Shown: piece after piece, positions 8,240 through 59,700 of the stretch | Numbering within the stretch: the stretch's first letter is position 1 | How the letters are laid out: each line of letters opens with the position of its first letter | From: Selaginella moellendorffii | Lineage: Eukaryota; Plantae; Lycopodiophyta | Assembly (NCBI RefSeq): GCF_000143415.4 | Contig: NW_003314312.1 | Location: 797,510-861,509 of the forward strand | Direction of reading: 5' to 3' | DNA length: 64,000 nucleotides | Notes under the pieces: generated by a model | Told to the model about the DNA's origin: nothing | Databases searched by the model: none | Seen by the model: the letters and a program-made list of their open reading frames with translations, nothing else | Translations under genes and position numbers: made by a program

Positions 8240-8244
8240 TCTTC

Positions 8245-18885: not shown

Positions 18886-19215
18886 ATGAAGAAGGCGACA
18901 CTCTCAACTTGTGAAAACTGCAAGGGGAAGACTGACGCGCTCAAGAAGATCAAAGGTATAGCACAATCTTTGCATTGGATCGCGGCCCTGATTCCATGAA
19001 ATCTCTGGTGCGGTTTTCCCAATAGGGGTCGATAAGGTGGAATCGGAGTCGTCAGGCTGGTGGTGATTGGAAAATTTGATGTGGACGACGTGCTAAAGGC
19101 GATGGATTGCCACCACAGTGTCCTTCGTTCCATCGAGAACAATTACGAGCCCCCCAAAAAGAAGGAAGCAGGCTCTAGCGTTATATATGTGTACACCCAC
19201 ACCTACAACCAGTGG
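18886..19215 (+). pseudogene. HMA-like copy B, with a 1-bp deletion in exon 2 and a transposon inserted at the last codons
   Basis: TCAGGCTGGTGGTGA versus intact TCAGGCCTGGTGGTG gives a frameshift and stop; native stop displaced to about 19900. Confidence 0.8.
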
Positions 19216-35922: not shown

Positions 35923-38172
35923 TTGCGTTGCAATGTGAGCGATGGCGGTGGATTCCAGCGCCAGGGCCAGGGCGCGGGCAATCGAAACGAGGTCAGTCAC
36001 TGGAAATCGAGCCGCCGCGGCAATGCGGCGGCGCTGCTGGCGGCATTGAAGGCCGCGAGCAGAGCCAGAGACATCGAGCGCGGCCGCCAGGCGCATCTGG
36101 AAGCCATCCATGGCGGGCTGGATTCCAGCGTTTTCGTGGCGAGCTCGCTCATCGATATGTATGCCAAATGCGGGAGGATGGAGGAGGCCAGGGCTGTGTT
36201 TGATGGGATTCTCCACCGCGACGTGGTTTCTTGGAGCTCCATCATTCTTGGCTACGCACAGAACGGGCAAGGGGAGGTTGCGCTCGAGCTCTTTGTTGAA
36301 ATGCAGCGTGCCAAGGCGGAGGATCCTTCTTCTCCGCAGGCTCCGAATTCCCAGACTTTCGTGGCTGCGATCAGAGCTTGTAGCAGCATGATCGACGAGA
36401 AGAAGGAAGGAAAAGTTCGCGAGGATCGAATGGCTTGTCTGGAGAAAGGCATGGCCATCCATGCTCGAGCTCGGCTGGGCGGATTGGACACGGATGGTTT
36501 TGTAGCATGTAGCTTGGTGGACTTTTACGCGAAGTGTGGAAGCATGGTGACTGCTTGCTGGGTTTTCGATCGAGTGGACGATCGCAGCTACAGTGACTTG
36601 GTGCTGTGGACTGCTCTTATCTCAGGCTATGCACACAATGGTGACGGCGATATCGCTCTAGAGATTTTCGAGCAAGCGAGTGCCTTCTTCGATGCGAGCT
36701 CTTCTTCTTCGAGCTCGTCCCAGAGTTACTCGACCCGGACGATTTTCTTAGCGGCCGTGAAGGCTTGCACAAGCATAGCAGCAAAAGAAGAAGTCACAGA
36801 CAAGCACAGGCTCGACCGCAGCGATGCTAACAAGTTCCTCAAGGCTGTGTCGCTAGAGAAAGGAATGGCAGTGCACTCGGCAGCGGCAAGGCTCGGGTAT
36901 ATCACGGCAGCAGACATTTTCCTGATGAGCTGCTTGGTGGATTTCTACGCAAAGTGTGGAAGCATGGTGGATTCGCAACGAGTTTTTGACAGCATGAGCC
37001 GTCACGACGTTGTCTCGTGGACTGCTCTTGTCTGGGGGTATGCACACAACGGGCAGGAGGAGATCGCTTTGGAAGTTTACGCTCGGCTCCAACAACAGGG
37101 CTGTGCTTCAAACTCCCAGACGTTCGTGGCTGCTCTCAAGGCCGTCGTCTGTCTCGCGGAGGCTGAAGTTGGCAAAGAGATCGACGGGAAAGTCGTCAAG
37201 GTGACGGCTTTGGAGAAAGGAATGGCGATTCACTCCCAGGCAGCGAGCAGCGGCAAGCAGCATCACACGGAGACTTTCGTAGCGAACAGCCTGATCGACA
37301 TGTACTCCAAGTGTGGAAGCATGGTGGACGCTCTGAGAAGTTTGGAGGCGATGGCTTCTCCTCCGGATATAATCTCGTGGACAGCTCTGATCCTCGGCTA
37401 TGCCGACGCTGGAGAAGGCAACCGAGCTCTCGAGATCTTTTCTCGAATGCAAAGTCAAGGTTGCCGTCCAAACGCTCATACATTCGTGGCAGCCCTCAAG
37501 GCCTGTGGCAGCATCTCGGCTGTAGGAACTGGAAGAGTGATCCACGGGGAAATCTGCAAGTTCGGCCTGGAAACAACACTCACTGCTGGGAACAGTCTGG
37601 TCGACTTCTACGGGAAGTCCGGAAGCATGGTCCGAGCTCGCCAAGTTTTCGACTGCATTCCAGCGCTCGACGTTGCGAGTTGGACGTCGCTCATGGCCGG
37701 ATACTGTCACCAAGGCGAAGCAATGGCAGTTCTCGACCTCTTCGTTGGGATGGTCGACCAAGGCGTGAATCCAAACGAGATAACTCTCGTGACAGTTCTC
37801 ACGGCTTGCAGCCACGCCGGGCTCGTCCACAGAGGCAAGCGCTACTTCTCAGACATGAAAGAGAGATTTGGTCTCACTCCCAGGATTGATCACTACCACT
37901 GCCTCATCGATCTTCTGGGACGAGCAAACTTGCTGGAAGAAGCACTCCAGGTCGCGAAGGCGATGCCAATGGAGGCTACTTCGGTGACATGGACGATCGT
38001 GTTGGTCGCGTGTGAGAAGTGGAAGAACATAGAAGTTGCGAAGATTGCATTTGAGGCCCTGGTGGTTTTGGACGAGAACCAGGCGGGATCTTACGTCCTC
38101 ATGGCCAATGTCTATCGCCAACTTCGACCATTTGTAGTTTCATCTGGAGGAAACAAAACGATCAAGCTGTGA
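35923..38172 (+). CDS. PLS-class PPR protein with extended L motifs and an E-type C-terminus; start codon uncertain
   Basis: 749-codon open frame; SLIDMYAKCG, DVVSWTALI.GYA.NG, ACSHAGLVHRG, HYHCLIDLLGRA; first in-frame ATG only at 36157. Confidence 0.88.
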   Translation: MRCNVSDGGGFQRQGQGAGNRNEVSHWKSSRRGNAAALLAALKAASRARDIERGRQAHLEAIHGGLDSSVFVASSLIDMYAKCGRMEEARAVFDGILHRDVVSWSSIILGYAQNGQGEVALELFVEMQRAKAEDPSSPQAPNSQTFVAAIRACSSMIDEKKEGKVREDRMACLEKGMAIHARARLGGLDTDGFVACSLVDFYAKCGSMVTACWVFDRVDDRSYSDLVLWTALISGYAHNGDGDIALEIFEQASAFFDASSSSSSSSQSYSTRTIFLAAVKACTSIAAKEEVTDKHRLDRSDANKFLKAVSLEKGMAVHSAAARLGYITAADIFLMSCLVDFYAKCGSMVDSQRVFDSMSRHDVVSWTALVWGYAHNGQEEIALEVYARLQQQGCASNSQTFVAALKAVVCLAEAEVGKEIDGKVVKVTALEKGMAIHSQAASSGKQHHTETFVANSLIDMYSKCGSMVDALRSLEAMASPPDIISWTALILGYADAGEGNRALEIFSRMQSQGCRPNAHTFVAALKACGSISAVGTGRVIHGEICKFGLETTLTAGNSLVDFYGKSGSMVRARQVFDCIPALDVASWTSLMAGYCHQGEAMAVLDLFVGMVDQGVNPNEITLVTVLTACSHAGLVHRGKRYFSDMKERFGLTPRIDHYHCLIDLLGRANLLEEALQVAKAMPMEATSVTWTIVLVACEKWKNIEVAKIAFEALVVLDENQAGSYVLMANVYRQLRPFVVSSGGNKTIKL

Positions 38173-40158: not shown

Positions 40159-41763
40159 TTATGGTAGTCGTACAAAAGAGTTCCCAGAGTACGGAACAGC
40201 GCCAAGGAGGATAGCGGCATCCTTGGAGGAAACACTGTATGGCATTGATGAGAGGAGCTCGCGGGCTTCGATCGCATAGCCCGATCGTGCGAGAGAGTCG
40301 ATCACGCAGCAGTAGTGCTGTTTCGATGGCTGGATCTGGTAATCCATCGCCGCGGAGACGAAGAACTGGCGGGCAGCGGCCGGAGATCCCGTGTGGCTGC
40401 ACGACGCGAGCACGGAGACGAAGCACACTGCGTCGGGAAGGTCTGTGAGGAGCATCTGGTGGAAGAGATCGCGAGCGCGGGCGTAGTGATTTGGGCCATC
40501 GTGATCACTGGGATGGGACGTGTGGGCGGAGAGCATTGTGCTCCAGGAGAATCCATCGCGCTCCGGCATTCGATCGAAGAATTGCTCCATTGCCACCAGG
40601 AGATCGCCCGATCGAGCGTGGGCTGTGAGGATCGCGTTCCACGACACGAGGCTCTTGATGGGCATGGAATCGAACAAAGCCCGCGATTGATCGAGGCAGC
40701 CGATGGATGCGAGTAGCGAAAGGATGGAATTCCACGAGATAAGGTCGTGCTCGGGCATGCAATCGAAGATGTCCCCGGCATGATCAGCGTCTAGAGCTTT
40801 CGCGTGCGCTGCAAGGATCGAGTTCCAGGAAACAATGCTGTGCTGGGGGATCTGATCGAAGAGCGATCGGGCTTCCTCGATCCGGCCTTCCAGGCCAAAT
40901 GCGGTGATTAGAGCAGTCCACGAGAAGAGATTGCGCTCCGGCATTCGCAAGAAGAGATTCTTGGCTTCGTCTAGCCTCCCGATTTGGGAAAATCCAGTGA
41001 GAATCGTGGTCCAGGAGACGAGATCTCGGCTCTCCATTGAATCAAAGAGAGACTTGGCAATGTCAAGATGTCCTTCTTGGGCATTTGCTGCGAGAATTAT
41101 GTTCCAACTGCGCAAGTTCCACTCCGGCATGGATCCAAACACAAGATCTACCATTGCTACATTCTTAGTTTGTAGTGCTACTACTAGATGTGTGTTCCAA
41201 GAAACAATGCTTAGCATTGGCATCAAATCAAAAGCGTTTGATACAGCCACAACATGCCCTGCCTCGGCAAATGCTGCTAAGAGAGAATTCCATGAGATTA
41301 GATTGGGCTCTGGCATTCTATAGAACATCCGTTTTGCTTCTTCTAGAAATCCAGCCTTTCCAAGTCCATAGATCATCGAGGTCCAGGAAATCGTGTTCCA
41401 ATGAGGCATAGAATTAAAAACCCCTTGCGCCTCGCGGAGATACCCACAGCGCATGTAAGCCGTGATCATGGCGTTGCAAGCGACGATGCTCATCGCTGGT
41501 TCTGGAATAGAATCAAAGACTAGCTTGGCAAGATCGAGATTGCCATTTTCGGAGCAAGCACACAGGAAAATCACCCAGGAGAATCTGTTCTTGCTGGAGA
41601 TAGAATCGAAAACACGCTTGGCTTGATCCAGGCTGCCACAGCGCCCATACATCTCGATCAGCCGATTGGAGTGGAGGATACCGTCGCTGGATCGATCCAA
41701 TTGCGAGAACTCAAGGAGCTGCGAGTGGATTGGATGCGCTTGAGCGAGAAAATGACAATTCAT
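40159..41763 (-). CDS. PLS-class PPR protein rich in tandem short motifs, with truncated E region
   Basis: Intronless ORF; NRLIEMYGRCG, repeated FD.MP...L.SWN, SCSHTG, HYCCVIDSLARSG; first ATG at 41763. Confidence 0.9.
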   Translation of the reverse strand: MNCHFLAQAHPIHSQLLEFSQLDRSSDGILHSNRLIEMYGRCGSLDQAKRVFDSISSKNRFSWVIFLCACSENGNLDLAKLVFDSIPEPAMSIVACNAMITAYMRCGYLREAQGVFNSMPHWNTISWTSMIYGLGKAGFLEEAKRMFYRMPEPNLISWNSLLAAFAEAGHVVAVSNAFDLMPMLSIVSWNTHLVVALQTKNVAMVDLVFGSMPEWNLRSWNIILAANAQEGHLDIAKSLFDSMESRDLVSWTTILTGFSQIGRLDEAKNLFLRMPERNLFSWTALITAFGLEGRIEEARSLFDQIPQHSIVSWNSILAAHAKALDADHAGDIFDCMPEHDLISWNSILSLLASIGCLDQSRALFDSMPIKSLVSWNAILTAHARSGDLLVAMEQFFDRMPERDGFSWSTMLSAHTSHPSDHDGPNHYARARDLFHQMLLTDLPDAVCFVSVLASCSHTGSPAAARQFFVSAAMDYQIQPSKQHYCCVIDSLARSGYAIEARELLSSMPYSVSSKDAAILLGAVPYSGNSFVRLP

Positions 41764-42002
41764 TCGCAATTGGGAAGATTTACCAAGGCTAGTGTTTGCT
41801 AAAGATTTACCAAACAATGGGGGCCAGTGGGAACGCGAGGCCGTTTGCTAAGCTAGGCAGAGTATATAAATTCCTCTGTCTGCCCTAGAACAGAGGTGAG
41901 GGATGATGGAAGAGAAGAATGCCGTCGCTTTGCTCGTCTCCCTTCCAGGGTTTCCAGGGTTTCCAGGCGGGAGCGGCTGATCCATCGAGGCGCGCTCTCG
42001 CA

Positions 42003-44679
42003 ATGGCGTCAGCGGGGTCTCCATCGGCTGCTGCTACCAAGATGAAGAAGCCGGCGAAACCAGCTCCCAAGGTGACTCTGGAGAGCTTTGTGAGCAAGAT
42101 GCTGCCTCTTCTCGAGCTGGAGAAGGTGACTGTGTGGATTCCTCAGCGATATTTCGAGTGATTTTGTGGATGGATTCGTGTGTAGGAGGCGGAGATTGCT
42201 GCGTCTACCGAAACAATTGGAATGACGAACCCTGACGTTCTACAGCAGCGTGGCTCGGCTTTGAAAGGATTAAAGTGTGTTGGTGTCGAGGTGAGTGGCT
42301 TGTACACTTTGCAGCTGCTTCATATTTCTTTCTCGATTCGTCAGGCAGGATTGCTGGGAAAGTCTTTGCTTCTCTTGCAACCGAATTCTGGAGAGCTTCT
42401 TCCGTCTCACAAGGTACATTTGTTTACGTTCTTGTGGTGTTTAAGTGCATAATTTCTTCATTGCTCTTCAGCTGTCTACACACGATGTTGTGCTTTTAAA
42501 GCCAAACAAGGGAGGCTCGGCAGCTGAATCCCTGGGTCAAGGTGTTGTCTACCGCATAAAGGTGTGGCTGGATTGTGATTTGTGGCTTCCTGATGTTTTC
42601 GCTTGTCTTTTGGTGGTAGGATAAGTCTATCACGGTTGCTATGGATGATGTTCCAGACGAAGGCGTTAATTCGCTTCTTAGGCTGGAGAAAGTCGCGAAT
42701 GAGGTTGGTACTCTAGTCACGAAGCTGATGATACAATGGCCTTGGTTCAGGTCACCTATCAAAGACTTAAAAGTACATTGTTGGACCTTGGCAAGGGTGT
42801 TTCAAGAGGTCCAGCAACTGATCTGGTTCCTGTGCTTTTCGGCGAGAAGCCTCCCTCGTTTTCCAAGACACATGCCACGTATGAACCTTACAACACAGAG
42901 CTTGACGAGTCTCAGGTGAGCGTTGTTGTCCATTAGTTTTCTTGAGAAATGATCTGCATCGTATCAGGTTAAAGCTGTCAAAATGGCTCTAAGCGCACAA
43001 GATGTGATGCTACTTCATGGTCCGCCTGGAACTGGGAAGACGACGGCAGTGGTCGAAATTATTTTGCAGGAGGTTAAGCGGGGGCTCAAAGTTCTTGCTT
43101 GCGCTTCTTCGAACATTGCCGTGGACAACATGGTGGAAAGACTCGCCTGCCACAAGTCTGTATAATTTGCATGCGTCATTGTTTTTTGAATTTTATACGC
43201 AGGGTGAAGGTTGTGCGCTTGGGACATCCAGCTCGTCTTTTGCCGCAAGTTCTTGACTGTGCACTGGATGCTCAGGCAAGCATTTTCAGTTTTCGTCAAG
43301 CTTTCTCAAAAGGGGATTCTTGCAGGTACTCAAAACCGACAACAGCTCGTTAGCCAAGGACATCAGAAAGGAGATTAGTGTAAGTCTTTCATTCCTATTG
43401 TTTTTCATGAACTGCATGGCATTCTCTTTCGTTGTCCAGGTTCTCAATGCGAAGATTCTAAAGGCCAAAGATCGAAAGAGCAGAGACGAGCTAAGGAGAG
43501 AGCTGCGCCAATTGTCGAAGGAAGAGCGCCAAAGACAACAAAAGGCTGTCACGGATGTCATTCAAGGTGCCTCTGTTGTGCTCACGACCTTGACTGGAGC
43601 CATGTCTGCACAACTGCAAAAGGTTGACTTCGATGTCGTTGTTCTTGATGAGGCTGCTCAGGCCCTTGAGACGGCTTGCTGGATCGCCATTTTAAAGGTA
43701 ATACCATTCTTTCATTCTTGTTTTGGGATAGAACGAGTGTGTTTTTATGTACTTGTGCAGGGACGAAGATGTCTTCTCGCTGGCGACCATCTCCAGCTCG
43801 CTCCAACAGTACTGAGCAAAGAAGCCGAGAAGCAAGGCTTTGGAACAACATTATTTGAACGCCTGGCAGGACTGTATGCCAGTCAAGCCATGACAATGCT
43901 CACAGTGCAGTACCGTATGCACGAGCACATTATGGATTGGTCTTCCCACGAGCTCTATGGCGGCAAGGTCGGTACGGATTGGACTTTTTGGGACTGACAG
44001 CGAGACATGCTTTTTACCAGATTCAAGCACACGAGCTTGTGGCAAGCCGCAAATTATTCGAACTAGATGGCGTCAAGAAAACTCCTGCAACTGAGCACAC
44101 GCTCGTCCTCATCGACATCTGTGGCTGCGACATGGAAGAGTCAAAGGACGAGACTGAGAGCTCTTTCAACGAAGGCGAAGCCCGCATTGCTATTACTCAC
44201 GCCCAAAAACTCGTAGAAAGCGGAGTTAAGGCTATTGACATCGGAATAGTCACACCGTATGCGGCCCAGGTATCTATATATTGTTTCAGAGTTTATGTTG
44301 TCTCTAAGTTTCATGCAATGCAGGTGAATGTTCTGAGGCGCATGAGAAATGAGGAACAGCGTTTACTGGAAGTGGAAATCAGCACTATTGACGGTTTTCA
44401 AGGCCGGGAGAAGGAAGCAATGATAATTTCCATGGTTCGCTCCAACGATAAAAAGGAGGTGTGGTTTTCTTGTTGAGGTAGCAGTGACACTAAAAGCTTT
44501 TGCTTTAGGTTGGGTTCTTGAGTGACAAGCGGAGGATGAACGTTGCAGTTACAAGAGCAAAAAGGCAATGCTGTGTCATATGTGATTCGGACACTGTGGG
44601 AAAAGATCCATTTCTCAAGCGGCTTTTGGATTATTTTGAGAAGCATGGAGAATATTGTTATGGTCTTTATTATCAATGA
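42003..44679 (+). CDS. IGHMBP2: SF1 Upf1-like helicase, IGHMBP2/SMUBP-2 homolog, multi-exon
   Basis: [10 protein letters not shown] (Walker A), [65 protein letters not shown]; ends [11 protein letters not shown]. Confidence 0.95.
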
Positions 44680-44869
44680 CTTAATTGCGGTTTCTCTGCT
44701 AACGTTTGAGACACATTGCCACGATCAATCTCATTGTTTCACTTGCGCTTACGGATCTATTTCAAGCTCTTGATCCTTGACCAGACGTGTGTCTCTACCT
44801 TTCTTTTATCAAATGATATTTGGATTAAAAGCTTTGGTTGTGAAACATCTTTCCACCTCTGGTTTTTTT

Positions 44870-45000
44870 AGTGCAGCAGTAGTTCCACAGGTGATCATTC
44901 TGACCTTGACATGCTCCAACGAGTGAGCATTCGTGCAGCCTTCTCCCCTCTATCACAAACCCGCTGCTGCAATCCTCTAATCGGGAGCCTCTGACAAAGT
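44870..45000 (+). mobile_element. Copia RNase H-region fragment
   Basis: ATGCTCCAACGAGTGAGCATTCGTGCAGCCTTC...ATCACAAACCCGCTGCTGC is the reverse complement of 50418-50475 inside the Copia remnant. Confidence 0.6.
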
Positions 45001-47517
45001 ACCATCTCTATTGCAGAAGTGCTCTTCGGACCGGACGTCAACGATAAGCTCTCGACCTGGAACCGGCATACCAGGTGCCAGATTTTATACCAGGGTCTCA
45101 ACAAGGAGAGTCATGGGTGATGCAGCGCACTTTGGACAAGCTTGTTGCTGTCCCGCTGGGAAAGCCCCACCGGTGAGCAAATTGAGCAACAGAAAGATTA
45201 CATTGACAAGACAAACAGTTCTTGGCCAGTGTTGTGCAGCTGATGTCCAAGTAGATGGAACCGACTCACTCGATACAGCCATGCAGTTCTCAAACAAGCT
45301 GAAAAATTAGCTGCTGATGGATCTGGAAGAGGAATTCAAAGGAGGGGCACGATAATTCGTGGCTATATGTTTCTTACTTAAAGATCCTTATCGACCAGTA
45401 TTTTGATTCCTCAGAGGAGTTTGCTTCCCTGGGAGAGCTGCAGAAGCACACATGCTATAAACCATAATGAGGATAGAAAAACTACGTAGATATCAAACTT
45501 GAACACCAATTTTAAGGTTTAATTCTTGCTGAAACTCTAGTCCCTAATAGTAAGTTTTCTCTGAAGCATGATTAGGAAATGATAAAAAAAGTACTTGAAA
45601 TCACTCTAAAACTACTTCATTGATAATCACTTCAGATTTTTTGTATCCCGTTATCATTATTTTACAATAATTTAAACATCAGTTTGTATTGGTGATAAGT
45701 AAAAATAATAACATTAAACTTTGATTATAAATTGAATTAGTGAAAATTTAAAAGTAGAAAATCATGACTATTGGATTGAGGAAACTATAGCTATATTATT
45801 TACACCTCTCCTACTACAAGTTTTCTAAAGAATAAAAAGTACTTAGAGGTTTTTGGTGTAGTATTGGATATACCTCAAAAATATTCTTAGATATTCTGGT
45901 ATATTTTACTATTTAACAAATTAGCCTTTAATTTATAAGCCTTTTCAAGTTAGTAAATACCCTTTACCTTTACCCTTTGAGCAAACACCTCCATACATAT
46001 TCTAGCAGTTAATGTACAATCTTGTGTATATAAATTATAAGCATGTTTGTACTTTATAAACATTATTAAACATGGATTCAATTTGGTCTAGTGGTCTCTT
46101 TGCTTTAAGTTTAGTTCCTTGTCAATAGCTATAAATGGGTGGTTCTATTCAATGGCATTGATGTGAAAGTTATGATTCTAGCTTTGTCCTATTTTCTAGT
46201 GTAAAACCAGAAAAAAAAAGCCATGGATCAAACTCCAGATCCAAGATTGATTGATATTGATTGCCAAATGATACTTCTACACTTTAATAAAAAGTATAGT
46301 AGTAGCCAATCAATGGAAAGAAAAACTAGTACATATCTAGCATTCTCTACATACCATTCAGCTTTAGAAAGTGGCAAGTTTAGAGTTTCAGGCAAAGAGC
46401 AAAGTGCTTATTAGGAAGTTTGTTTTTCCTTTATTTGATCTAGTATTTATGTATCTTGAGTCTATAAAAAAATATTTTAAATGATTTCAGTTCTAAAGTA
46501 TATTGTTATAATAGGTGCACTGCCTCAAATTGTGAATCAAAATTTGAAGTTAGAATAAAAGGATTATATATTATAGTAAAAATAAGTAAATTATTAAAAA
46601 AGTTAATATGTAATTTAATATTTGCTTATGGAGTCTTTTGCTTCATGTAGAGCCAAAAATGTCAAAACAAATGAAGTTGGATATATTGTGGCTAACACTT
46701 TATCAAAGTTTTTCAAGACTTATGCATATATTCGCCCCAACCATTTTTGACGCTTTTCGATTGGTACAATGTTAGGAAATATCACTTCTTCCACATATAA
46801 TTGCATGTGCTTCAGTTCCATATCATAAAATTTTTAATCAATTAGAAAAAGGTGTGCACTGTTGTTTATGGGTGTTTTCCTCTATACTTGAATTTGTACA
46901 AATCATCTCTTTAGTTATTTTCTTTAATTATTTACAGATATAAAAAGTATAAATATGATGCTATATACTAATATTATCATAATGAGATTTGATTTTAAAT
47001 TCAAACAATTTCCTATTTTCTCTCTATATAAACTATGTTTATTTAGTATGGCTTAACTTGAAAATATCATAATTTATATTATAATACTAATAATACTAAT
47101 TTTCTTACCATTCAATATAAAAAATAAATCTAAAGTCTATTGTGATTTAGAAGAGCTTATTTTTCCTATTTCTGTAATGTAATATTTCAATATAAACCAA
47201 ATTAAAATTAATTTATACTATATTTTATTAATTAAATTTTTAAAATAATAATTTTAAAAATGCCAAAAAAATTTATATATTAGATATATGGTAACTGTAT
47301 TAAAGATTTAAATTTTAAATTATCTTTTATTTTATTATAAATTAGAAGTTATAACATTTAGCTATTTTTATTAATATTTATTTTAATTTTAAATTTTTTG
47401 TGTAAGTTAATAGTGTAGTCAAATATAAATCTAAATTAAAAGTCATATTAGTTTTGTAGTATTTTATATATAAAAGGTTTTAAAACTCTTTTTATCACAC
47501 TCTTATTAATTATAGAT

Positions 47518-48384
47518 ATGAAGTATTTTTATATTTTATTCTTTTTTACATTTTGTATTAACATACAGATAATTTTTGCTCCAAAGAAGTTTCCTCCAGC
47601 ATTTGGAAGATTAAATATTTTAAATCAGCATGATATTAAAACAATTATTGGAGCTATTTATGGTTTAATATTTACAATTGATCGTGCAAAAAATGATTAT
47701 ATTGTTCAAACATTTAGTGAACAAACTGAAGTGATTACATCACAAGGAATTGTTGATTTGATAATTAAAGTTAAGCCAAATTGTGATGGTGATGGTACTG
47801 AAACTATTAAAGGTGAGAATTTAATAGAAGGTTTTAATAGAATTGTGAGTAGTACTGTTACTAGTATTTCTGAAAATCTTTCAGACTTTTTTCAAAAAGA
47901 AACCAATAAATTTTCTATACAGTATAAACTTAGAGAAAGGTCTGAACTTTTATTAGAAAAAAGACATGAAAAATATCATACTTTATTTTTATATTGTCGT
48001 CTTGAAAGTAGCAATTTATATTCTGGTTTTAAAATCTATAGAGATCAATTTTTAAGATCACCAAATAATAAGAATAGTTTGTTATTGGATTCAAGATGTA
48101 ACCTTATCTTATATTCAAAAAATTTTAAAATTTGGGAATCTGAAACATCAAGAAATACTTATAAAAATTGCTTTTTATTATTAATGTTAAATGGTAATTT
48201 GGTTTTGTTTTATGATGAAGAAATTATATGGGATACTAAAAGTTTTTGTAAGGAAAGTCATTGTACTTTGATATCAGTGTTCACTATTCAAAATGATTGT
48301 AATTTAGTAATTTATAATGCAAAATATCCTAATACTGTATTATGGTCGTCAAAAACCTCACATCATAAGTTCTGTTATATTTAA
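47518..48384 (+). CDS. Secreted protein with an unrecognised N-terminal domain and a C-terminal bulb-type (GNA/B-lectin) mannose-binding domain; extremely AT-rich
   Basis: 288 aa intronless ORF; hydrophobic signal peptide; LRSPNN..LLLDSRCNLILY...IWES.T...LLLMLNGNLVLF....IIWDT...IQNDCNLVIY....VLWSS; QxDxNxVxY intact at the third site; TATATATAAAA about 45 nt upstream and AATAAA at 48418. Confidence 0.8.
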   Translation: MKYFYILFFFTFCINIQIIFAPKKFPPAFGRLNILNQHDIKTIIGAIYGLIFTIDRAKNDYIVQTFSEQTEVITSQGIVDLIIKVKPNCDGDGTETIKGENLIEGFNRIVSSTVTSISENLSDFFQKETNKFSIQYKLRERSELLLEKRHEKYHTLFLYCRLESSNLYSGFKIYRDQFLRSPNNKNSLLLDSRCNLILYSKNFKIWESETSRNTYKNCFLLLMLNGNLVLFYDEEIIWDTKSFCKESHCTLISVFTIQNDCNLVIYNAKYPNTVLWSSKTSHHKFCYI

Positions 48385-48636
48385 TTATTAAAAAGCATTA
48401 TCGTTCTAGGTTTACTTAATAAAATTTAGTAATTTTAGCTAAATAATAATAACCTATCATTTGTGATCTCCTCTAACAATTATTTAAGTAGTGGTGGAGT
48501 TGCTATTATTCTTTTAGATGTATGTAAATGTATATTTTTTTAAAATACCTGTTGCTCCTACTAATAATAATATAAAGTTTCTTAATGTTTTTTAAGGGAC
48601 CCTTTGATAGTTTAATTCCATATACACATCTTCTAA

Positions 48637-48960
48637 TCAAGCAAAGTTAGTAGAACCAGCAAAAGGAGCAGCAAGCCTGGACAACAATCCGCTGTTGGCA
48701 GCATCACTGTTGCTGCTGGAAGACAATGATGATCCTTGGTTACTACGCGAGCTCAAATTCTTGGTGGAAACGTTCCTTGGCACGTCGACAGTGAGGCACA
48801 GATCTACATTCCCACGAAGATCCAAGTTCTCGCCTAAGATGAAATCTCTTTGGAAAGGCACTGGCCCGGAGAGAAGATTGTTGCTGAGATTGAGATGATA
48901 GATGTTGGAGAGCATACCGCAGAAAGCTCAAATCCTCACGAGCTCCGGCGATCACACTTG
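48637..48960 (-). pseudogene. Plant extracellular LRR (receptor-like protein) C-terminal fragment
   Basis: LRYALQ.. / LSNIYHLNLSNNLLSGPVPF...LGENLDLRGNVDLC (LxLxxNxLSGxxP and GNxxLC cap); no upstream gene body. Confidence 0.7.
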
Positions 48961-49059
48961 CATCTTGTAGGACGTGGAGGCACAGAAACACCTAGCGCAG
49001 TTTGGTTCTGAGTCGTCCTCGGGTACACGTCTGATGTCATGAGGTGAGACTGACTACGA

Positions 49060-49875
49060 GAGATGCTTTCTACCAGATTCAAGCACACGAGTTTGTGGCA
49101 AACCGCAAATCATTCGAACTAGATGGCGTCAAGAACTCCTGCAACTGAGCACACGCTCGTCCTCATCGACATCTGTGGCTGCGACATGGAAGAGTCAAAG
49201 GACGAGACTGAGAGCTCTTTCAACGAAGGCGAAGCCCGCATTGCTATTGCTCACGCCCAAAAACTCGTGGAAAGTGGAGTTAAGGCTATTGACATTGGAA
49301 TAGTCACGCCGTATGCGGCCCAGGTATCTATATATTGTTTCATGGTTTACTTGTCTCTAAGTTTCATGCAATGCAGGTGAATGTTCTGAGGCGCATGAGA
49401 AATGAGGAACAGCGTTTACTGGAAGTGGAAATCAGCACTATTGACGGTTTTCAAGGCCGGGAGAAGGAAGCAATGATAATTTCCATGGTTCGCTCCAACG
49501 ATAAAAAAGAGGTGTGGTTTTCTTGTTGAGGTAGCAGTGAGAGTAAAAGCTTTTGCCTTAGGTTTGGTTCTTGAGTGGCAAGCGGAGGATGAACGTTGCA
49601 GTTACGAGAGCAAAAAGACAATGCTGTGTCATATGTGATTCGGACACTGTGGTAAAAGATTTCTCAAGCGGTTTTTGAATTATTTTCAGAATATTGTTAT
49701 GGTCTTTATTATCAGTGACTTAATTGCGGTAAGCTCCTCGTTTCTCTGCTAACGTTTGAGACACATTGCCGCGATCAATCTCATTGTTGCACTTGCGCTT
49801 ACGGATCTATTTCAAGCTCTTGATCCTTGACCAGGCCCTTTCTTTTATCTATGATATTTGGATTAAAAGCTTTGA
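49060..49875 (+). pseudogene. Partial duplicate of the helicase 3' exons and 3' UTR
   Basis: Near-identical to about 44000-44835, introns included; small deletions near 49135 and 49660 shift the frame. Confidence 0.9.
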
Positions 49876-49939
49876 AACATTTTCCCAGCTCTAAGTTTGG
49901 TGTTCCTCAGAAGAAAGAAGCCCTTATTACCACCTGCTT

Positions 49940-52387
49940 TTTACTGCACCAGTAGATCCACATCACTGCCTGTAAAAGAGCTATCTGGCTGAGACAACTT
50001 TTCACTGACCTGGGTCTCGGTTTTACATAGATTTCTTGCGACAACCAAGGTACTATTGCCTTGAGCAAAAATCACAAGATTTCTTCCAGAACAAAGCATA
50101 TGGACATGGTGCATCACTTTCTGAACAGCCCTTGGTGTCTCCCCCAGTGGGAGTATTGGGAGATCCGGACAGCCACGTACGTCCGGTTTTTTTTCTTGTG
50201 GTTCATTGCAATACAATTCAATAGAATGACAACTGCTCCAACTCAAGCAAAAAGCAGTGTCTATATGCTGTTTTTGAGAGTATTGCGGTGCCCATCGAGA
50301 CTGATGGATGCAAAAATGCAATTTGGAATTTTCGTGCTGTCTTCGTTGTCGTTTTGCTCCGGCTATCTGCTCGTCTTCTCTTATTCGAGATCAGATGCCC
50401 CGATTATGAACCAGAGGGCAGCAGCGGGTTTGTGATAGAGGGGAAGGCTGCACGAATGCTCACTCGTTGGAGCATGTCATTAGCAGCCAAATGCCCTGCT
50501 TCGCAGCTTGAACAGGCAACCACACTTTGTTTCTTGCTACTCCAGGACATAGCAGCTTCACGAAGGCTAAAGAAATAGCCCGTGTGTGATCGACGTGAGT
50601 CAATCGCTATATCCCTGTAAGCTGCAAGATTTTGGCGTATAGAAAATGGAAAGTAGCATGTACGTTTCGTTTTACGGCTGAGGAGGATCAAGAAACCTGC
50701 TTACCATGCTTACCACAAAAGCGAGATCTGGCCGCATGCCACAGCCAAATACATCAAACTTCCGATAGCACTTTTTGAATGCTTTTGTCATCAAGCTTTT
50801 TGTACCACTGTCGGAGGCAAGCCATAAATCGCCTTGTGGAGCTTCCACACATAGCTTTCTTTCCCTGGAACTTTGTATCCATCGGACTGCTCCATGCAGA
50901 TGTCTTCATCGAGCTATTCATTCAGGAACGCTGTCTTGACATCCATTTAGAGCACGAGCAGGGTGCGGATTGACCACCGGCGCAAAAGTCTTCGTGTATA
51001 CTCCAGCTACTTGCGAGTAGCCTTTTACTAGCGTTTGATCTGTTGATAGTGGGAATCCACATGGACTTGTACCAATTTTCGCCCGGCCGGAGCTGCTTTC
51101 ACAAAAGAAAAAGTATGAAGGAATTGTACTCTTAGTGGAAAGCTGCAGCACAGCTGCGAGGAACTTCTACGCCAGCCGGCAAAATCTCGATGAGACTCTG
51201 TTGCAAGCATGGTTGGGGGGAGAGAATAACCCCAGGCTGAACCAGTTTCGTGGCGTGTTGCTAGGGTACAACGAGGAGTTACAGGTTGTTCAATCCCCAC
51301 GCCACGCTCACTTGGCATAAGCCTCCTCCGGTTTTTCTTGGGGATGTGGGTGAAGGCCTCACAACCAAAAACAAGCCACCGACCAGTCTTCCTTTAGGCG
51401 TCTTGCTCGCGACGGCCCTGGTGGGATTTGTAAGTAGCATGCGGTCATAACCGCTTCAGCCCAAAACATTACATTATAAGCCTGAAGCATGCTATTTGCC
51501 CCATCAATCAGGCTCCGGTTTTTCCTCTCAGCCATTCCGTTCTGCTGCGAGGAATAGGGGGCAATTTGTTCCCGTTGAATCCCATGTTTCTGGAGGAACA
51601 TGGAAAATTCGCGAGAAACGTACTCACCACCTCGATCTGAACGAAACCGTTTAAGTTTCTTGTTCGTCTGATTCTCAGCGAGAGCCTTAAAAATCTCAAG
51701 CTTGTTGAGAGCTTGAGATTTGGACGTCAAGCAGTCTTCCTGCTGTAGTCAAAGTGATAAAGTATTTCGAGCCGCCAAAAGAAACATGAGGGGAAGGACC
51801 CCAAATGTCACTATACACGAGCTCTAATACTTGGGAAGCTGAAAGTGGGATATGATGCTGCTTGCCGAGTTGACAACCTTGGCAAAAAAAGAGGTTTTCC
51901 AAGGTCTCTAAACTTGGAATCCATGTGATCTTTGGAGAGAGCTCGCGTGGCCAAAGCGCTTGTGCCAAAGCTCTAGCTGATCGGTTTTGGAAGCCACGAA
52001 CGTAAGGAAGTGATGTGGTTTGTCAACCACTTCGACTGCTTGTATGTGGCGTCCACATATCACAAGTGTTCAGCATGATTCGTTTTCTTGCAATGCGGGC
52101 AGGGGTCGAATTTCCTGGTCGTGTTGGAAGAACTCCCACTGGAACGTGACGGTTTCTTCTTGCCTGGCCTTGCTGTAATGGGAGGGAGCGAGGTGGGGAA
52201 GGAGGGGGAAGAGGAGGAGGAGGTGGCAGAGAATTTGGAGAATTTGCTGCCATGGGAGGTGCACTAATCCATTCTCCTTGCTCTAATTTGCCTTGTGATA
52301 CATCTTGTTGCTGCTTGAGCATGCCAACGCATCCTACACTGCTCTCTCCATCTCCTAGTCATCCTGGATCGTACTGCTCTGATACCA
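49940..52387 (-). mobile_element. Decayed Ty1/Copia LTR retrotransposon
   Basis: PBS TGGTATCAGAGC (tRNA-iMet) at 52387-52376; CQGCQLGKQH...LELVYSDIWGP; integrase RSDRGGEY...APYSSQQNGMAERKNRSL; RT (LVKGYSQVAGV.Y..TFAPV) and RNase H (SWSSKKQSVVACSSCEA) remnants; INT-RT-RH order. Confidence 0.9.
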
Positions 52388-53919
52388 TGTTGTCATTCCA
52401 TTGAATTGTATTAAAATGAAATTGGATGAACCACAAGAAAAAGAACCATACGTGTCTCCCAACTTGACATGTCAGCCACGTGGCTATTTGGATCTGCCTG
52501 TGATCCATGCTGAGTTTACCTTTGTAACTTCATTCTGTTATCTAATATGGTTGTTACAAGAAATGAGTATGGACTTCAGTTCAACCATCCACTACACTTA
52601 TATAGCTAGTTCAAGGTGATGTGGAAAGATAAAAGTTTAATGGGTTAATTTCCTGTATTCTAAACAAGAGAAGAAAAGTTATTGTTAGTGGCTCAATCTC
52701 CCATGCTGAGACTTTTGTGTCCACCAGTGGATTTAAATGTCGTAGGATTTGTCTTGCTTCAGTAAGTTCTCATCAAGTTTGACCAGTATCATCTTATAGT
52801 TAGAACTCATGGTTTCCTAAAGCAATAGTATAAGCCAACTACAAAAATCTCGATGAATTAATTGCAACCTTTTATGCAATTGCCAAATGCTTAAACTAAC
52901 CTTGAAATTATAATTTTAAATTGAAATAAAGTTTTTAATAGCCACAATAATCCATAAAACACCATTGTAGCAAATAATATCTTAAATTTATTCATCGGCC
53001 ACCCTCTGAAACCATTATTAACTTGGAATTATAACAAACGGAACATGTCTCTACATTTCCTCTTGAAATTTGCATAACTGACTCACAATTTTCATCTTAA
53101 CACCATATATAAGAGGTTAAACTCATTTTATTTGTCCCCAAGGGAAAAAATGTTCTAAAGCATTGGCTATGTTTGGACTTGTTACACTCATCATCACTCC
53201 ACTATTATATATATTTGCCCTTATTGTGTTAATGTCAGTTGTTCTATTTAAATTTGCTAGACTCATCTTTACTTAACAATTCATGTTATTTGCTATCACT
53301 CTATTGTCATATTCATTTGTCCTCACATCATCATTAGAGTTGAACTCTTGCTCATCCCCTTTACCTTGTTCTTTGAAGAAAAAAAAGTTTAAAGAGTTGG
53401 GATAAAGAAGAAGAAATAAAAAAAATAAAGAAGAAATATTGTAGAAGAAGAAAAAATAAATAAAGAAGCATTAGAAAAAGAACTTTTGGAATTGGAGAAA
53501 TATGGGTTTCACTTTAGGACGTAGGGATTTTTTTTATATGTGCTAATACTATAAATAAGGAAGAAATGTTAGAAACCTAAAGAGGCCATAAAGGCTAAAA
53601 ATATAAAAAAAGTTAGGAAAGAGTAGAAAGTAAAGGAAAAAGATCTGATAATAAATTAAGAGAATCAACTTATCACAATGTGAAAGATTTAGATCATCAT
53701 TGTAGCCATTCTATCTCACAACCTCTCCAAAATTAATTCAGACTTCTATTTGTTTTTGCTAGTTTCTACATGTTTGTCTTCACTCCTAGATAACACTTAG
53801 ATTGGTGACTTAGTGTATGATTGTATGATTCATCAATATACAGCTTAACATGTCCAATAATTCATGTGAGTTGAAATGTTTATCTCACTCATTTAATAAC
53901 TTCAAGACATTGAAGTTAT

Positions 53920-53921
<2 letters not shown>

Positions 53922-54004
<83 letters not shown>
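53922..54004. repeat. (TA)n microsatellite
   Basis: About 41 perfect TA units. Confidence 0.98.
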
Positions 54005-54009
<5 letters not shown>

Positions 54010-56797
54010 GAGCTTTTATGCCACCGTATTACTATTTCTTTGTAATTTTATTTGCATTCTTCTTATGTGTGGTGATGTGTTTTATAAATGTCCTTTAGTT
54101 CTCACTTATAATAATACTCACAAAGTGTAAAGACTTTTAGCATGCCACTATTACTTCCACTTTCTTCAAATACATACAAAATTTTCAATATTTATGCTCT
54201 TCTAGTGGTAATATTATATGTTTACCCACCTATAGCAAGTGGTCTATATAACTTCTATTGCACCTCTAAGATAATTTTGTGATCCATCAATATTTTACTA
54301 GATTGAAGATAAAATATAATATCAATAAAAAATATATTAAGTAACAAAATAAATTTAATGTCATTTGTAAATAAATACCTGTGAACAGGAAATAGAGTTT
54401 TGTCTTATAATTAATTAAGCATATCACTAAAGTGTTTTGCTAAAATTTAAATCTGTGCTAGCAAACACTATTCAACCTTATTATATTATTTGAGAATGTT
54501 CTTTCTTTTGTCATAAAAATAGAAGTGTTAAATAAAACATTTGAAATAACATTCAACATATAACACATTTATATTTCTTTTCTACTTGGACAACATTAAA
54601 TAATGCTTTGAAACACAATCTCAAATGTAAATATAAGTGTTATATAACACTTTATTTTTTAGTAGATTTTCTTGTTTATAGATGTTATTGCAATGTAATA
54701 TTTATACAAAATTACTATAGTGATGCTGTTATATCAAGTGCATCCACATAAAGCTCCTCTGTCCACCATTGTTTTTATTATGAAAAATTATACATTAATG
54801 TCAAAATTTATAAACAACTAAATATCACTATAAAGTTTATTATGATGTTTCTAAGCCTTTTGCCAACAACAAACTTTTTCTAGACTACATCATTATTTTT
54901 TGGTATGATGAATATTTTTTGGTAGCTTTATAAAAATTTAGAGTAATTACACTAAGCTAAATAATCCTCAAAAGTAAGTTGAAAGCCTAGAGATAAGATA
55001 TTCTATCTTTACCTTTTTTTATTTGGAAAGAAAACCCAAAAATAAAATAGAAACATCTTATATTCTCAAATATCCACTTATCTTTAAGTGAAAAAAATGT
55101 AATATGAAATTTTTTGTTTCATTGCTCATAGATTATTGCTATCAAAAGCGTGATGGCATATAAGTAAGTTTGAAAAGACATTAGATTAATCAATTTGACA
55201 TTTAGTAAAATCATGAAAGATATTATGTTAACATTAAGTATAAATATTTATAAAAATGTTTTCATAATCTAATGGAATTGTATTATATGTTCTCTTACTT
55301 TGAACAAAGAACTTTACATTCACTTTAGACCTATTTAATTACTCAATCAAGTCAGTTGCACTTTAGAATTGTCAATCCAGTGTGAGTAAGAGGCTTGTAG
55401 CCAGATAAAAATAAAGAGAAATGAAAAACATTTATAAGTGTCTGTGTGAGGAATGACAGAAAGTCCATAAAATAGGAATAATAGAAATAATTTAAAGAAA
55501 CTTATTTTAGAAGTTTATGTAATGAGAGTTATTTTAAGGTTCTTTTCTGGGACTTTAGCATCACAAGTTTTCAATTTAGCTTCATCTTTGGCATTTTTTC
55601 TTTCTTTTAACCCATTTTTCAAAGCAATATTAATTAAAAAATCTTTCTAGAAAATGCACACTATTAAGCTAAATATTTGACACTCTTTATACCTAGAAAT
55701 TGTAAGGCTTAATAATTCTGTCCCACATAACACCTTACTTGAGTGAATTTAATTTTTAACTCACAACTATTAGCCATAAGACAATTATAAGTAAATATAA
55801 ACTTAATGTGCAACTAAATGTCTTCTTAATATGCAACTAAATATCCATCTCCCATGTGATGAATCTGAAGTCATTTCTGAAGTCCTTTCTATCTTGCAAT
55901 GAATTTAAAATCCTTTACCTATTTTTAGTATCTCAAAATCAAATGACTTAATGTATTGCTTACATGATCAGGTTATATGGGATTAGGTGAGAACCACTTT
56001 GCAAAAACATGTCTTTGTCCTATTAGGAAGGCCTCAATGGTGAGCACATTGAGCAATAAAAAGATCACATTGTTATGATTGATTGTTCTTGGCTAGTGTT
56101 ATCCAAGTAAATGACTAAGGCAACAATAGGATTGAGCTCTTACCAATAGTGAAGATGAATTGAGTCTAAGTTTGCAGCATATGGCTCACTCAATATAGTT
56201 ATCAAGCAAGCTAGAAAATTAGTTGTTAACAAATCTAGAAGAGGAATTCAAAGGGCTAGGCTACATATTTCTTACTTAATGATCCTTACTAATAAGTATT
56301 TTGAGGAGTTTGCTTCCCTGGAAGAGCTGCAGAAGCATATTCTATTTTCGTTTCAAACCATAACAAGGATAGAAAAATTATATAGACATCTATGGGATGC
56401 AAGTCAAACTTGAACACCAATTTAAATTTAAATTTTTGCTAAAACTCTAGTTCCTAAATCGTTTTCTCGATTAGGAATAATAAAGAAAAGTTTTTGAAAT
56501 CTCTAAAAACTACCTCAATACTTATTATAAATAAACTTTTTAAAGTTTTGATCACTTTTTGTTTTATGTACATGTTATCATTACCTTATAAGAATGAGTA
56601 AAATTTAAAATAATAATTTGTATTGGAGCGTATTCCCTGAACGGGCATATCAGCAAAGCCAGGAGAAATGCCCCCAAGAGCTCAATGGAGGCATTTCTTG
56701 CTACAAGTTTCCTAAGGCAAACAAACGATATTTAGAACACTCATTTTTTAAATTGTGTTATTAAATATATGTAAAAGGTTTTCTTGAATATTCAAGT

Positions 56798-59700
56798 TGT
56801 GAGTGCTTGGAATATGAAAAGGGAATATAGAAAATGTGCATATCAATTAACCCAAAAACCCTAGTTTATAAACAGGAGCAAGTGGTCTATATTGAAACCA
56901 ATCCGACGACTACCAAAATCCCACTAGGCTAATATTAATATACGGCATCGTAGCTGTACACTTGGCCTTCACATCATCCCCTCCTCTCAAAATAATGAAA
57001 GACCATCAGGATTCTCTTATAGACAGGCCAGGATTTAGAGGAACGTCAAGAGTAGGCATCGGCGGATCTGTAGGTGGTATTAACTTTTCCTGATCCCTTT
57101 GTGTGAAACGTTTCAACTGCTGCATATGCACAATCTCTGGAGGATCGGCTTGCTGGATATTATGCCGAACTTCATAAACTTGTGGTCCAACTTGCTGCAG
57201 CATCCAATACGGTCCTTTCCACTGCGCAAGAAGCCCATTAGATAAACCATGTATTGTAAGATGGGGAAAACGGACTAACACTAAATCATCCACTTTATAA
57301 TCTATATGTGGATGATGATGGGAGTTGTAATGTCATTGTTGTCCCACTTGTATGCAGCCTAAGTGTTTAGCAGACTCTGCTCGGACAAGTGGAAGAATAC
57401 TCGTCAAATATTAATCCCATGACCTAGCATCGGCAGCTCGTGGCAATTGTGATGGTAAACCCAGCTCCGTTAGAATATTGGATCATGACCATATATGAGT
57501 TTATATGATGAAGCACCAACAAAACTCTACACCTCTGTGACATATGCATACCGAAGAGACAGCAAATAACCATCCCAATTCGAATACTAAAAGTTCATAT
57601 ACTTCGCAATCATCCTTTTGAATGTCCGAATGAGCCGTTCCACCACACCGTTTGATTGTGGATGATAAGCACTCGTGAAAGTGTGGCGTATCCCCAACCG
57701 AGATGTCAAAACATGAAATGCCTTAGCCATAAATGCGGGACCATTATCTGAAAGAATTTGCTCTGGACAAGAATGCTGGAATACCACTCGATTGAGGAGG
57801 AAGTATTCAACAGCAGTTGCAGAGGCACTAGCAAGAGCACCAACTTCCACCCAATGAGTCAAGTAGTCAGAAGCAATAATAACATACTCATTGCTAGCAG
57901 TCGACCATGGAAAAGGTCCCATAAGATCAAATGCCACCAACTCAAATGGACGAGAAACTGCAATTGACTCCAACTGTCCTTTCGTAGCACAAGAGGGAGT
58001 ATTACAAGATTGGCACTAAACATAGTTACGCACATACCAGATAATATCAAGTCACATTTTTGGCCAATAGAAAGACCTATGCAGCTTCTTGGTTATATGA
58101 CGATGTCCCATATGCCCACATAAAATAGGAGAATCATGGTAGACATGGAGAAACTACGGAATAAAGATAGAAGGCACCACCAGCTGTAAATGATCATGAG
58201 GATCTGTCCCCACAAAATAAAGAAGACTATTTTTAAGGCGATATTGAGAATGTAAATTCCGGAAAGGCAAGTCATCAGCAAGTGATGCAGGATTCTCAAA
58301 CCCATCTCGAAGCCTTCGAATCCACAACTCAATCTTTTGAGCCTTGCGAACCTCATTAAAAGAAGGTAGATCTTGTTTTGCACCTTGTGAACACTAAATG
58401 TCAAGTACAGCAACCGCCGGCGGCACAGAATCCTCATCTAGAAAATCCACAGATGCTGGAACAACAGACTCGTTAGAAATATGAGAAGAGAGTGGAAAAG
58501 GAAGAGGAGCTCAAGAAAAGGCATCAGCATCAGTATCAGCCATAGAACTTCTTGGGCAATGAACAACATCAAAATCATGTATCTGAAGCTTCAAAGCCCA
58601 TCGAGTAGTACGACTCACTATATTCTTCCGCTTCTATAATGAAGTAACAAGAATATGGTCACCTTCAAGTAATGTCTAAGAACCATGTACATATGCATAA
58701 AGTTTCTCAAAACCCTATACTGCTGCTAAACACTCCTTTGTTGTAGAGTAGTTCATCTCTGCCAGTTGTAATGTACAGCTTATATATGCAATGGGATGGT
58801 GTTGACCATGTACACTCGGGCTCTCTTGCATCAATACACCTCCAAGACCAATGTCAGAAGCATCTACGTGCAAAATAAAAGGTCAAGTGTAGTCAGGATA
58901 TGCCAAAACCATAGGAGTCGTCAATAACTTTTTGAGATCCACAAACACCCGCTCACAATTTGGAGACCAAATGAAAGATGGCTTTGATGACTTCAGCAAC
59001 GCTCGCAATGGTGCAATGCAATCAGAAAGAAGATCCACAAAACGACTGAGATACTGCACCTTGCCCAAAAAACACTACACATCATTCACACACTTCAGAT
59101 AAGGGAACTTTACAACAACCACAAGTTTGTCAGGATCAACTTGTAAACTCTCTTGAGAAATATGGTACCCTAGATTGTGTCCTTGGACCCAAACATGCAC
59201 TTTGATCGCTTCAGCTTTAAACCAACATCGCGTAGCCAATCTAACACTTTACAAATATCACAAACGTGCTTCTCCCACATCCCCTCCGAGTGGATCAAGA
59301 CATCATTAATGAAGTTAGCACTCACCTCCGGTATATCGTAAAGAACCTCATCCATCATCCACTAGAAAGTTGCTAGAGAATTGTTCAAACCAAACGGAAT
59401 CACCAAGAACTTGTACAAACCAAATGGTGTACAAAAAAAAGTCTTAGGAATATCTTCTTCGGCCATCGGTACTTGCCAGTACCCAGAAGCAAGATTTAGC
59501 TTGGTGAACTAACGACTTCACCCCAGACGATCCAAGAGATCAGCAGTGTGAAGAAGAGGGTACACATGTGGGATTGTCACTTCGTTTAACGAACAATAGT
59601 CGATGCAAAAACGAATACTCCTATCAGACTTCGTCACAAGATGAGGTTCACATACCCAAGGACTCCACGACTTTGGAATAACACCCTTCTCCAACATCTC

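Follow-up and report, generated by a model that had tools for sequence, protein, structure and literature searches.

We analyzed a 64,000-nucleotide stretch of the genome of the lycophyte Selaginella moellendorffii (assembly GCF_000143415.4, contig NW_003314312.1, positions 797,510 to 861,509 of the forward strand), referred to here as the window, and describe a single-exon gene in it that encodes a chimeric lectin. Its product consists of a hydrophobic N-terminus, an orphan domain of approximately 140 amino acids, and a C-terminal GNA-type (B_lectin) domain (Table 1). The GC content of the 288-codon coding sequence (CDS) is 24.0%, with 28, 30, and 13.5% GC at the first, second, and third codon positions (the last referred to as GC3), compared to 48-55% GC and 51-63% GC3 in neighboring open reading frames (ORFs) for PPR, germin-like cupin, and helicase proteins. 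Given that the genome-wide mean GC3 of S. moellendorffii is 60.65%, with most genes between 0.35 and 0.95 (PMC11276031), the gene is an extreme GC3 outlier in this genome. A preliminary description of this DNA, made from the letters alone, had reported an 867-nucleotide stop-free frame of 20-25% GC, with A or T in almost all third positions and a foreign-looking composition, among genes of about 50% GC, and our measurements agree with it on each of these points.

The same description held that the frame is too long to have arisen by chance, and we likewise rejected a chance ORF. At the composition of this frame the probability of a stop is 0.095 per codon and the probability of no stop in 288 codons is 3.5e-13. 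The observed stop-free run spans 310 codons; across 2000 shuffles of the island the longest run had a mean length of 74 codons and was 134 codons at most, and the remainder of the gene's AT-rich island contains no run longer than 69 codons.

Table 1. Features of the lectin-fusion locus and its flanks, in window coordinates
Position	Strand	Feature	Basis or remark
43989..44860	+	Left copy of ~0.87-kb direct repeat, helicase 3' part with AAA_12	Brackets the island
45128..46990	.	Left part of island: AT-decayed repeat fragments, not part of the gene	blastn matches; CpG observed/expected 0.16
47000..47517	+	Extremely AT-rich upstream region, putative promoter and 5' untranslated region	15% GC, no CpG; TATA-like strings at -53 to -49
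47518..48384	+	AT-rich lectin-fusion CDS, single exon	ATG to TAA, 288 amino acids plus stop
47518..47580	+	Hydrophobic N-terminus, residues 1-21, putative signal peptide or signal anchor	Read directly; position conserved in paralogs
47581..48006	+	Orphan N-domain, residues 22-163	No Pfam, PDB, or profile match
48007..48381	+	GNA-type (bulb-type, predicted beta-prism II) lectin domain, residues 164-288	Pfam, PDB profile, Foldseek, HMMER
48289..48315	+	Sole intact QxDxNxVxY mannose-binding motif, subdomain III, residues 258-266	Motif scan
48385..48636	+	AT-rich 3' flank, AATAAA at +34	Ends at the stop of minus-strand ORF 48637-48915
48637..48915	-	92-amino-acid ORF convergent with the lectin gene	Stop codon forms right edge of island; LRR-like by eye
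49045..49892	+	Right copy of ~0.87-kb direct repeat	~91% identical with gaps, 97% in ungapped blocks

Domain architecture of the product

The C-terminal domain matches Pfam B_lectin (PF01453) at E = 4e-8 (34.1 bits vs. a cut-off of 32.4), as do all three intact members of the family described below. Against the sequences of the Protein Data Bank (PDB), the family profile found gastrodianin-4 at E = 3.4e-17 and also matched gastrodianin, garlic, snowdrop, and daffodil lectins (E = 1e-15 to 1e-17 for the first three), with bacterial LlpA and pyocin L1 scoring far below the plant GNA-type lectins. An exhaustive HMMER search of 1.84 billion representatives returned 1112 matches, all to residues ~164-286. 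In a low-confidence structure model (predicted local distance difference test, pLDDT, 55-65 in the lectin part), Foldseek aligned about 97 columns with gastrodianin 1xd5/1xd6 at a template modeling score, TM(target), of 0.61-0.63. Membership in the putidacin L1/LlpA family (NF033557) was rejected, with a score of 42.5 bits vs. a cut-off of 275.

Three motif-bearing repeats recur in the lectin domain at a spacing of approximately 32-33 residues. The preliminary description had recognized a B-lectin domain with one intact QxDxNxVxY site, and in the window copy this site is that of subdomain III, subdomains I and II being degenerate. Subdomain II holds an intact motif in all three paralogs, each of which carries one or two motifs (two in one paralog). 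The window copy would dock on mannose-containing glycans through subdomain III. In one paralog (L002, 10022-10245) the three subdomain motifs are visible as a 29-nucleotide direct repeat with a spacing of 96-99 nucleotides and 76-83% identity; because codons end almost exclusively in A or T, the conserved peptide motif becomes near-identical DNA.

The preliminary description could not assign a region of approximately 150 amino acids, and neither could we: residues ~22-163 matched no family in Pfam, no PDB sequence even at E = 10, and nothing credible in PHROGs or NCBIfam. A profile of this N-domain matched none of 5.8 billion proteins, word-seeded searches with the protein, the family profile, and the N-domain profile yielded no full-length or N-domain relative, and the exhaustive HMMER search gave no N-terminal match among the best matches listed. 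Several candidate relationships were discarded. Homology to P0047 or P0093 involved only a low-complexity Lys/Glu linker, or nothing, and the idea that the N-domain is a degenerate second lectin domain was rejected at an hhalign probability of 0.2%. One alignment (A3) was excluded from folding because MAFFT had forced tandem-lectin matches onto the N-domain. Among the paralogs the N-domain is 37-41% identical, and it and its linker contain two conserved cysteines. It was modeled in effect from a single sequence, and fold searches are informative for the lectin part only; both low-confidence models share helices near residues 37-57 and 99-113 and a further helix that begins at 118-119, and the modeling suggests an alpha/beta fold.

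The hydrophobic stretch of about 21 residues that had been called a signal peptide is found at the same position in all paralogs and is putatively a signal peptide or signal anchor. The paralog alignment has an invariant Ala-Pro directly after the hydrophobic segment. A proline at +1 disfavors cleavage by signal peptidase, so it is uncertain where cleavage would occur, and whether the segment is a cleaved signal or a signal anchor. The TATA box and AATAAA signal noted earlier are likewise present, but such strings are expected by chance in DNA of this kind and carry little weight, since the 3.2-kb island contains 17 TATAWAW and 6 AATAAA strings.

A dispersed paralogous family

The gene had been treated as a single oddity, a view that database searches overturned. 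Its only close relatives among 15 billion proteins were three short S. moellendorffii models of 117, 103, and 72 amino acids, 48-52% identical and annotated as lectin fragments. At three paralog loci on other scaffolds (L001-L003), tblastn shows intron-free homology in one frame that begins at residue 5 or 19 of the window protein and ends at residue 281 or 286, with 39-43% amino-acid identity. These loci are found within GL377565.1 (3,890,088-3,910,441), GL377566.1 (3,493,588-3,513,899), and GL377594.1 (1,062,169-1,082,384). Identity among the paralogs is 39-46%, and their alignment has 81 invariant columns, including eight cysteines and the lectin core; all intact copies share the eight cysteines of the mature protein. 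Intact ORFs of 287 and 288 amino acids, which begin with the same hydrophobic segment, are present in L001 and L002. In L003 the conserved frame is free of internal stops; this copy is probably decaying, given that it lacks an in-frame start, has one apparent frameshift near the 5' end, and has lost the subdomain-III motif and the C-terminal cysteines. All four copies have a GC content of ~24% and a GC3 of 10-13.5%. On these alignments the gene is a member of a small, old, and dispersed paralogous family of at least four copies, and we regard it as highly probable that this is a real lectin-fusion gene family under selection.

The family has largely escaped notice. No protein record matching the window copy was found in the protein collections searched, exact-product look-ups with the neighboring PPR ORFs retrieved no record of annotation around the island, and no paper citing the three paralog accessions was found in the literature searched. 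The genes of this family are mis-annotated even in S. moellendorffii itself. Because the paralogs are annotated only as lectin fragments of 72-117 amino acids and the window gene is unrecorded, surveys of plant lectins missed the architecture of an orphan domain joined to a GNA domain.

Base composition and mutation signature

In the window, GC content falls below 35% near 45400-45500, is lowest (8-15%) at 47100-47500, and exceeds 45% from about 48630. The repeat fragments in the left part of this island have blastn matches at 55995-56457, 60654-60876, and 61731-62326 with 65-74% identity (one 26-nucleotide match has 96%), and are common to the window's other two AT islands and to a Ty3/Gypsy relic at ~57000-61400. 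C>T and G>A changes account for about half of all mismatches to the GC-normal copy, compared to 21-23% for the reverse changes.

At paralog loci L001 and L002 the AT island comprises only the gene and short flanks. The L001 island (~9300-10500) is flanked on one side by a PPR gene, which ends at 9240, and on the other by a convergent gene, which ends at 10503; the L002 island spans ~9300-10700. Both are only about 1.2-1.4 kb long, with sharp edges at GC-normal neighboring genes, which lie 150-720 bp away on the tight sides, and no transposable element (TE) was found beside the gene at either locus. Nucleotide homology between copies is 61-63% and stops at the CDS ends. AT-richness is therefore a property of each gene copy and a few hundred base pairs of flank, not of a genomic compartment, and the TE relics at the window copy are neighbors, not the cause. 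Around the gene we found no terminal inverted repeats (TIRs) or long terminal repeats (LTRs) other than low-complexity chance repeats, and no tRNA, Rfam, or tandem-repeat features. Carriage as cargo of a mobile element (TIR, LTR, or Helitron-borne) was rejected on the lack of terminal repeats and because the copies share neither termini nor flanks. Outside the lectin family, no long ORF was present in any AT island examined.

Third codon positions in the family are 88% A or T, essentially a two-state system, and the proportion of synonymous differences (pS) between paralogs is 0.44-0.50, such that synonymous sites are saturated. The ratio of nonsynonymous to synonymous divergence (dN/dS) proposed as a check in the preliminary description can be computed, at raw values of 0.58-0.78 overall, 0.46-0.52 in the lectin domain, and 0.74-1.16 in the N-domain, but with synonymous sites saturated under such A/T bias these values are unreliable and were set aside. 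The copies have diverged to saturation without drift towards the composition of the host. The three intact CDSs contain 10 CpG dinucleotides, compared to 31.1 +/- 4.9 expected from shuffles that keep the composition of each codon position, and none of 2000 shuffles had as few; the GpC control gave 32 observed and 39.8 expected. Flanks show the same roughly three-fold depletion, with 4 CpG observed vs. 14.9 expected. Observed/expected CpG is ~0.97 in the neighboring PPR genes and 0.11-0.30 in the AT-rich TE relics.

Search for a donor

The 15 billion proteins yielded no relative of either the full protein or the N-domain, and searches with family peptide motifs gave no tblastn-confirmed relative in IMG/VR, 185,579 prokaryote genomes (GTDB), or JGI metagenomes. 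The nearest lectin domains outside Selaginella score 40-53 bits and belong to plants (Ranunculus, Nymphaea) and to environmental multi-domain proteins (CHAP + lectin, cutinase + lectin). In BFVD the top fold matches are to bulb-type lectins from AT-rich Mimiviridae, whose identity is only 16-19%, compared to 27-33% for plant lectins in the PDB. Gene families of S. moellendorffii listed as resembling those of nucleocytoplasmic large DNA viruses (NCLDVs) include no lectin family (PMC4083422). Assignment as an endogenous giant-virus (NCLDV-like) gene is not supported, given the lack of a tblastn-confirmed IMG/VR relative, the low identity of the viral lectins, and the lack of other ORFs in the islands. 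Horizontal or viral acquisition, which the preliminary description had offered as one of two explanations, found no support in these viral, prokaryote, metagenome, and protein searches, and the nearest solved lectins are plant GNA-type lectins.

Genomic surroundings

The ~0.87-kb direct repeat encloses a 4.2-kb segment with the TE relics, the lectin gene, and the short LRR-like ORF, and could represent a segmental duplication or a local mis-join in a two-haplotype assembly. An 88-nucleotide piece at 44907-44994 recurs in inverted orientation at 50391-50479. The LRR-like ORF has no Pfam match and may be a gene fragment. The helicase gene in the window encodes AAA_11 and AAA_12 domains. Three tandem germin-like (Cupin_1) genes of normal GC content are found at 3726-4412, 8559-9224, and 9989-10645 (minus strand), and three long PPR genes without introns, of which one has an E motif, at 15222-17123 (plus), 35923-38172 (plus), and 40159-41817 (minus). 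A 633-amino-acid PPR product of the window has an exact match on record in S. moellendorffii scaffold GL377616.1; the window corresponds to this scaffold with an offset of +797,509, which puts the lectin gene at about 845,027-845,893. A PPR gene also lies directly upstream of the L001 paralog (7426-9240), which is probably a coincidence since the S. moellendorffii genome contains many PPR genes. The most GC-rich part of the window (56-60% GC) holds a 763-amino-acid ORF at 30089-32380 (minus) without a Pfam match.

Two further AT islands, at 53000-56500 and 61500-63500, have 26-27% GC, an observed/expected CpG of 0.11-0.30, and no long ORFs. The first contains a (TA)n microsatellite of about 100 bp (53909-54016). 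The second holds copies, inverted and decayed towards AT, of the gag-side region of the neighboring Ty3/Gypsy relic; half of their mismatches are C>T or G>A. The relic is a degenerate LTR retrotransposon on the minus strand (57000-61400) with reverse transcriptase, RNase H, integrase, and integrase C-terminal domain in order, its pol frame broken into several short ORFs. Decay of these repeats resembles repeat-induced point mutation (RIP) and is most simply explained by deamination of methylcytosine. On the L001 scaffold, a 7-kb block upstream of the PPR gene (1-7000; 19-40% GC, no ORF of 90 or more amino acids) shows that a large AT-decayed block coexists with a small, gene-sized AT island.

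Discussion

The most likely reading of these results is a lineage-specific, putatively secreted chimeric lectin family under selection. Its product would enter the secretory pathway via the N-terminal hydrophobic segment, and the eight conserved cysteines would be as in extracellular disulfide-bonded proteins. The N-domain may supply a second activity as an effector, an inhibitor, or an oligomerization module. A role in defense would be likeliest, given the analogy to chimeric lectins of the GNA type and to the antifungal gastrodianins. The composition could result from long-standing, gene-local, AT-biased mutation, in which TE-like cytosine methylation and deamination acted while selection preserved the protein. 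This mechanism would be the most economical one because saturated copies keep a GC3 of 10-13% and CpG is depleted as in the TE relics, and we favor a gene-local deamination bias since it would account for the CpG signature, the AT-rich flanks, and the lack of drift without invoking an unseen donor. We give the account as a whole, a selected lineage-specific lectin family together with gene-local AT-biased mutation, a slightly better than even chance of being correct; that methylation-driven bias in situ explains the composition is plausible, if somewhat short of even.

Several points weigh against this account. The methylation and deamination step, which we infer, is its weakest link; CpG depletion could be explained equally well as the signature of a donor; and a gene that carries methylation of the silencing type and is nonetheless kept by selection requires a special expression context. 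High raw dN/dS by itself is no proof of constraint on the N-domain, the structure models are poor (pLDDT 34 and 39), and one of the paralogs is probably decaying. We found no orthologue outside S. moellendorffii in collections that probably contain few lycophyte proteins, so any vertical descent is putative.

The strongest competing explanation is repeated foreign acquisition. The copies would have diverged in an AT-rich donor such as a giant virus, protist, fungus, or symbiont and been inserted separately and fairly recently, as single-gene segments of ~1.2-1.4 kb that kept the composition of the donor and are intact because they are young. A composition wholly foreign to the host, dispersed intronless copies without common flanks, sharp island edges, saturated divergence with no drift towards host composition, and the decay already visible in L003 would all be expected. 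Gene families of likely NCLDV or horizontal origin have been reported in S. moellendorffii (PMC4083422), and AT-rich Mimiviridae encode bulb-type lectins, the top fold matches in BFVD. However, four separate single-gene insertions into short intergenic spaces are demanding, no further foreign genes lie beside any copy, and neither the full protein nor the N-domain yielded a relative in IMG/VR, GTDB, JGI metagenomes, or the 15 billion proteins. The viral lectins are also less similar to the family (16-19%) than plant lectins are (27-33%), and the reported NCLDV-like families of Selaginella include no such lectin. On balance we consider this explanation unlikely, although it deserves serious attention.

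Other explanations fare worse. The preliminary description offered, as the other of its two explanations, a gene maintained in a hypermutated, TE-rich compartment, in which the gene would be AT-rich because it sits in an AT isochore comparable to the RIP-affected regions of fungi. The window copy does adjoin AT-decayed, CpG-depleted TE relics with an excess of C>T and G>A, and two more such islands are present in the window, but L001 and L002 have the same composition (~24% GC) in TE-free, gene-sized islands of 1.2-1.4 kb between GC-normal genes, with homology confined to the CDS, and in the AT islands examined the lectin ORFs are the only long ones to persist. The paralog loci largely refute the compartment model, which we now regard as very improbable. 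An artefact, in the form of contaminant DNA or an assembly chimera, would account for the alien composition, and the direct repeat that brackets the island (~91-97% identical) could mark a local mis-join in a two-haplotype assembly. Yet the family occupies four loci on four scaffolds, each flanked on either side by plant genes no more than a few hundred bases away, which makes contamination very unlikely; the paralogs, at 39-46% identity, are not duplicates of one contaminant read, and the window is identical to the public scaffold GL377616.1 where compared (5.9 kb, 13222-19123). We put the chance of an artefact close to negligible.

The contrast that needs explaining is between saturated paralogs at a GC3 of 10-13% and genes a few hundred bases away near 55-60%, and this composition is explained by none of the explanations tested. 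Either a mutation regime can stay restricted to single genes over very long periods, or Selaginella took up genes on repeated occasions from an unsampled AT-rich source. We speculate, with considerable reservation, that the copies are either separate, fairly recent captures from an unsampled AT-rich donor associated with Selaginella, or a plant family held permanently in a TE-like methylated state, driven by deamination to a GC3 of about 10%, while selection preserves the protein. If the former is true, the candidate donor would be a giant virus or else a symbiotic or parasitic eukaryote of AT-rich composition, the combination of N-domain and lectin would be a glycan-targeting factor of the donor lineage, and the insertions would be its only surviving trace. 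If the latter is true, the family would correspond, in a plant and at the level of single genes, to the effector genes of hypermutated compartments in fungi. The N-domain, at approximately 140 amino acids in four copies and without a relative in 15 billion proteins, is a candidate for a new fold or a new activity delivered by a mannose lectin.

The family can be compared to several known systems. The exoribonuclease and EFJ10148 families of S. moellendorffii are multi-copy and have been proposed to be of horizontal or viral origin, with the exoribonuclease sequences under purifying selection (PMC4083422). The lectin family is likewise multi-copy in this species, but unlike those families it has no viral homologue beyond generic B_lectin fold matches. 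Lectin-like bacteriocins (LlpA/putidacin L1, pyocin L1) share B_lectin homology with it and are secreted proteins in which lectin binding targets a killing activity, but they are tandem double B_lectin proteins, whereas the N-domain here is not a lectin. The situation of an intact gene for a putatively secreted protein beside AT-decayed, C>T-mutated repeats recalls fungal effector genes in RIP-affected AT isochores, with the difference that AT-richness here follows the gene and not the compartment; to our knowledge, RIP is not known in plants.

Chimeric proteins with GNA domains have been described, including GNA joined to peptidase M11 and the GNA/S-locus/PAN/kinase architecture (PMC6362431). 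The lectin here is C-terminal, whereas G-type lectin kinases carry theirs at the N-terminus. As in other chimerolectins, including the nearest database matches (CHAP + B_lectin, cutinase + B_lectin), a B_lectin targeting module is joined to a second module, but the partner domain in this family matches none of those families nor any other. Compared to the GNA-related lectins themselves, the lectin here forms the C-terminal half of a protein that also contains an orphan domain, identity is ~27-33%, GC3 is 13.5%, only one of three sites is intact in the window copy, and there are four extra conserved cysteines. At the same time, the C-terminal 125 residues match gastrodianin/GAFP (1xd5, 1xd6) and the snowdrop and garlic agglutinins (1jpc/1msa, 1bwu) with E-values of 1e-15 to 1e-17, and they retain the threefold internal repeat, which is visible even in the DNA of L002, the conserved cysteine pair of subdomains I/II, and the QxDxNxVxY site that characterize this group of lectins.

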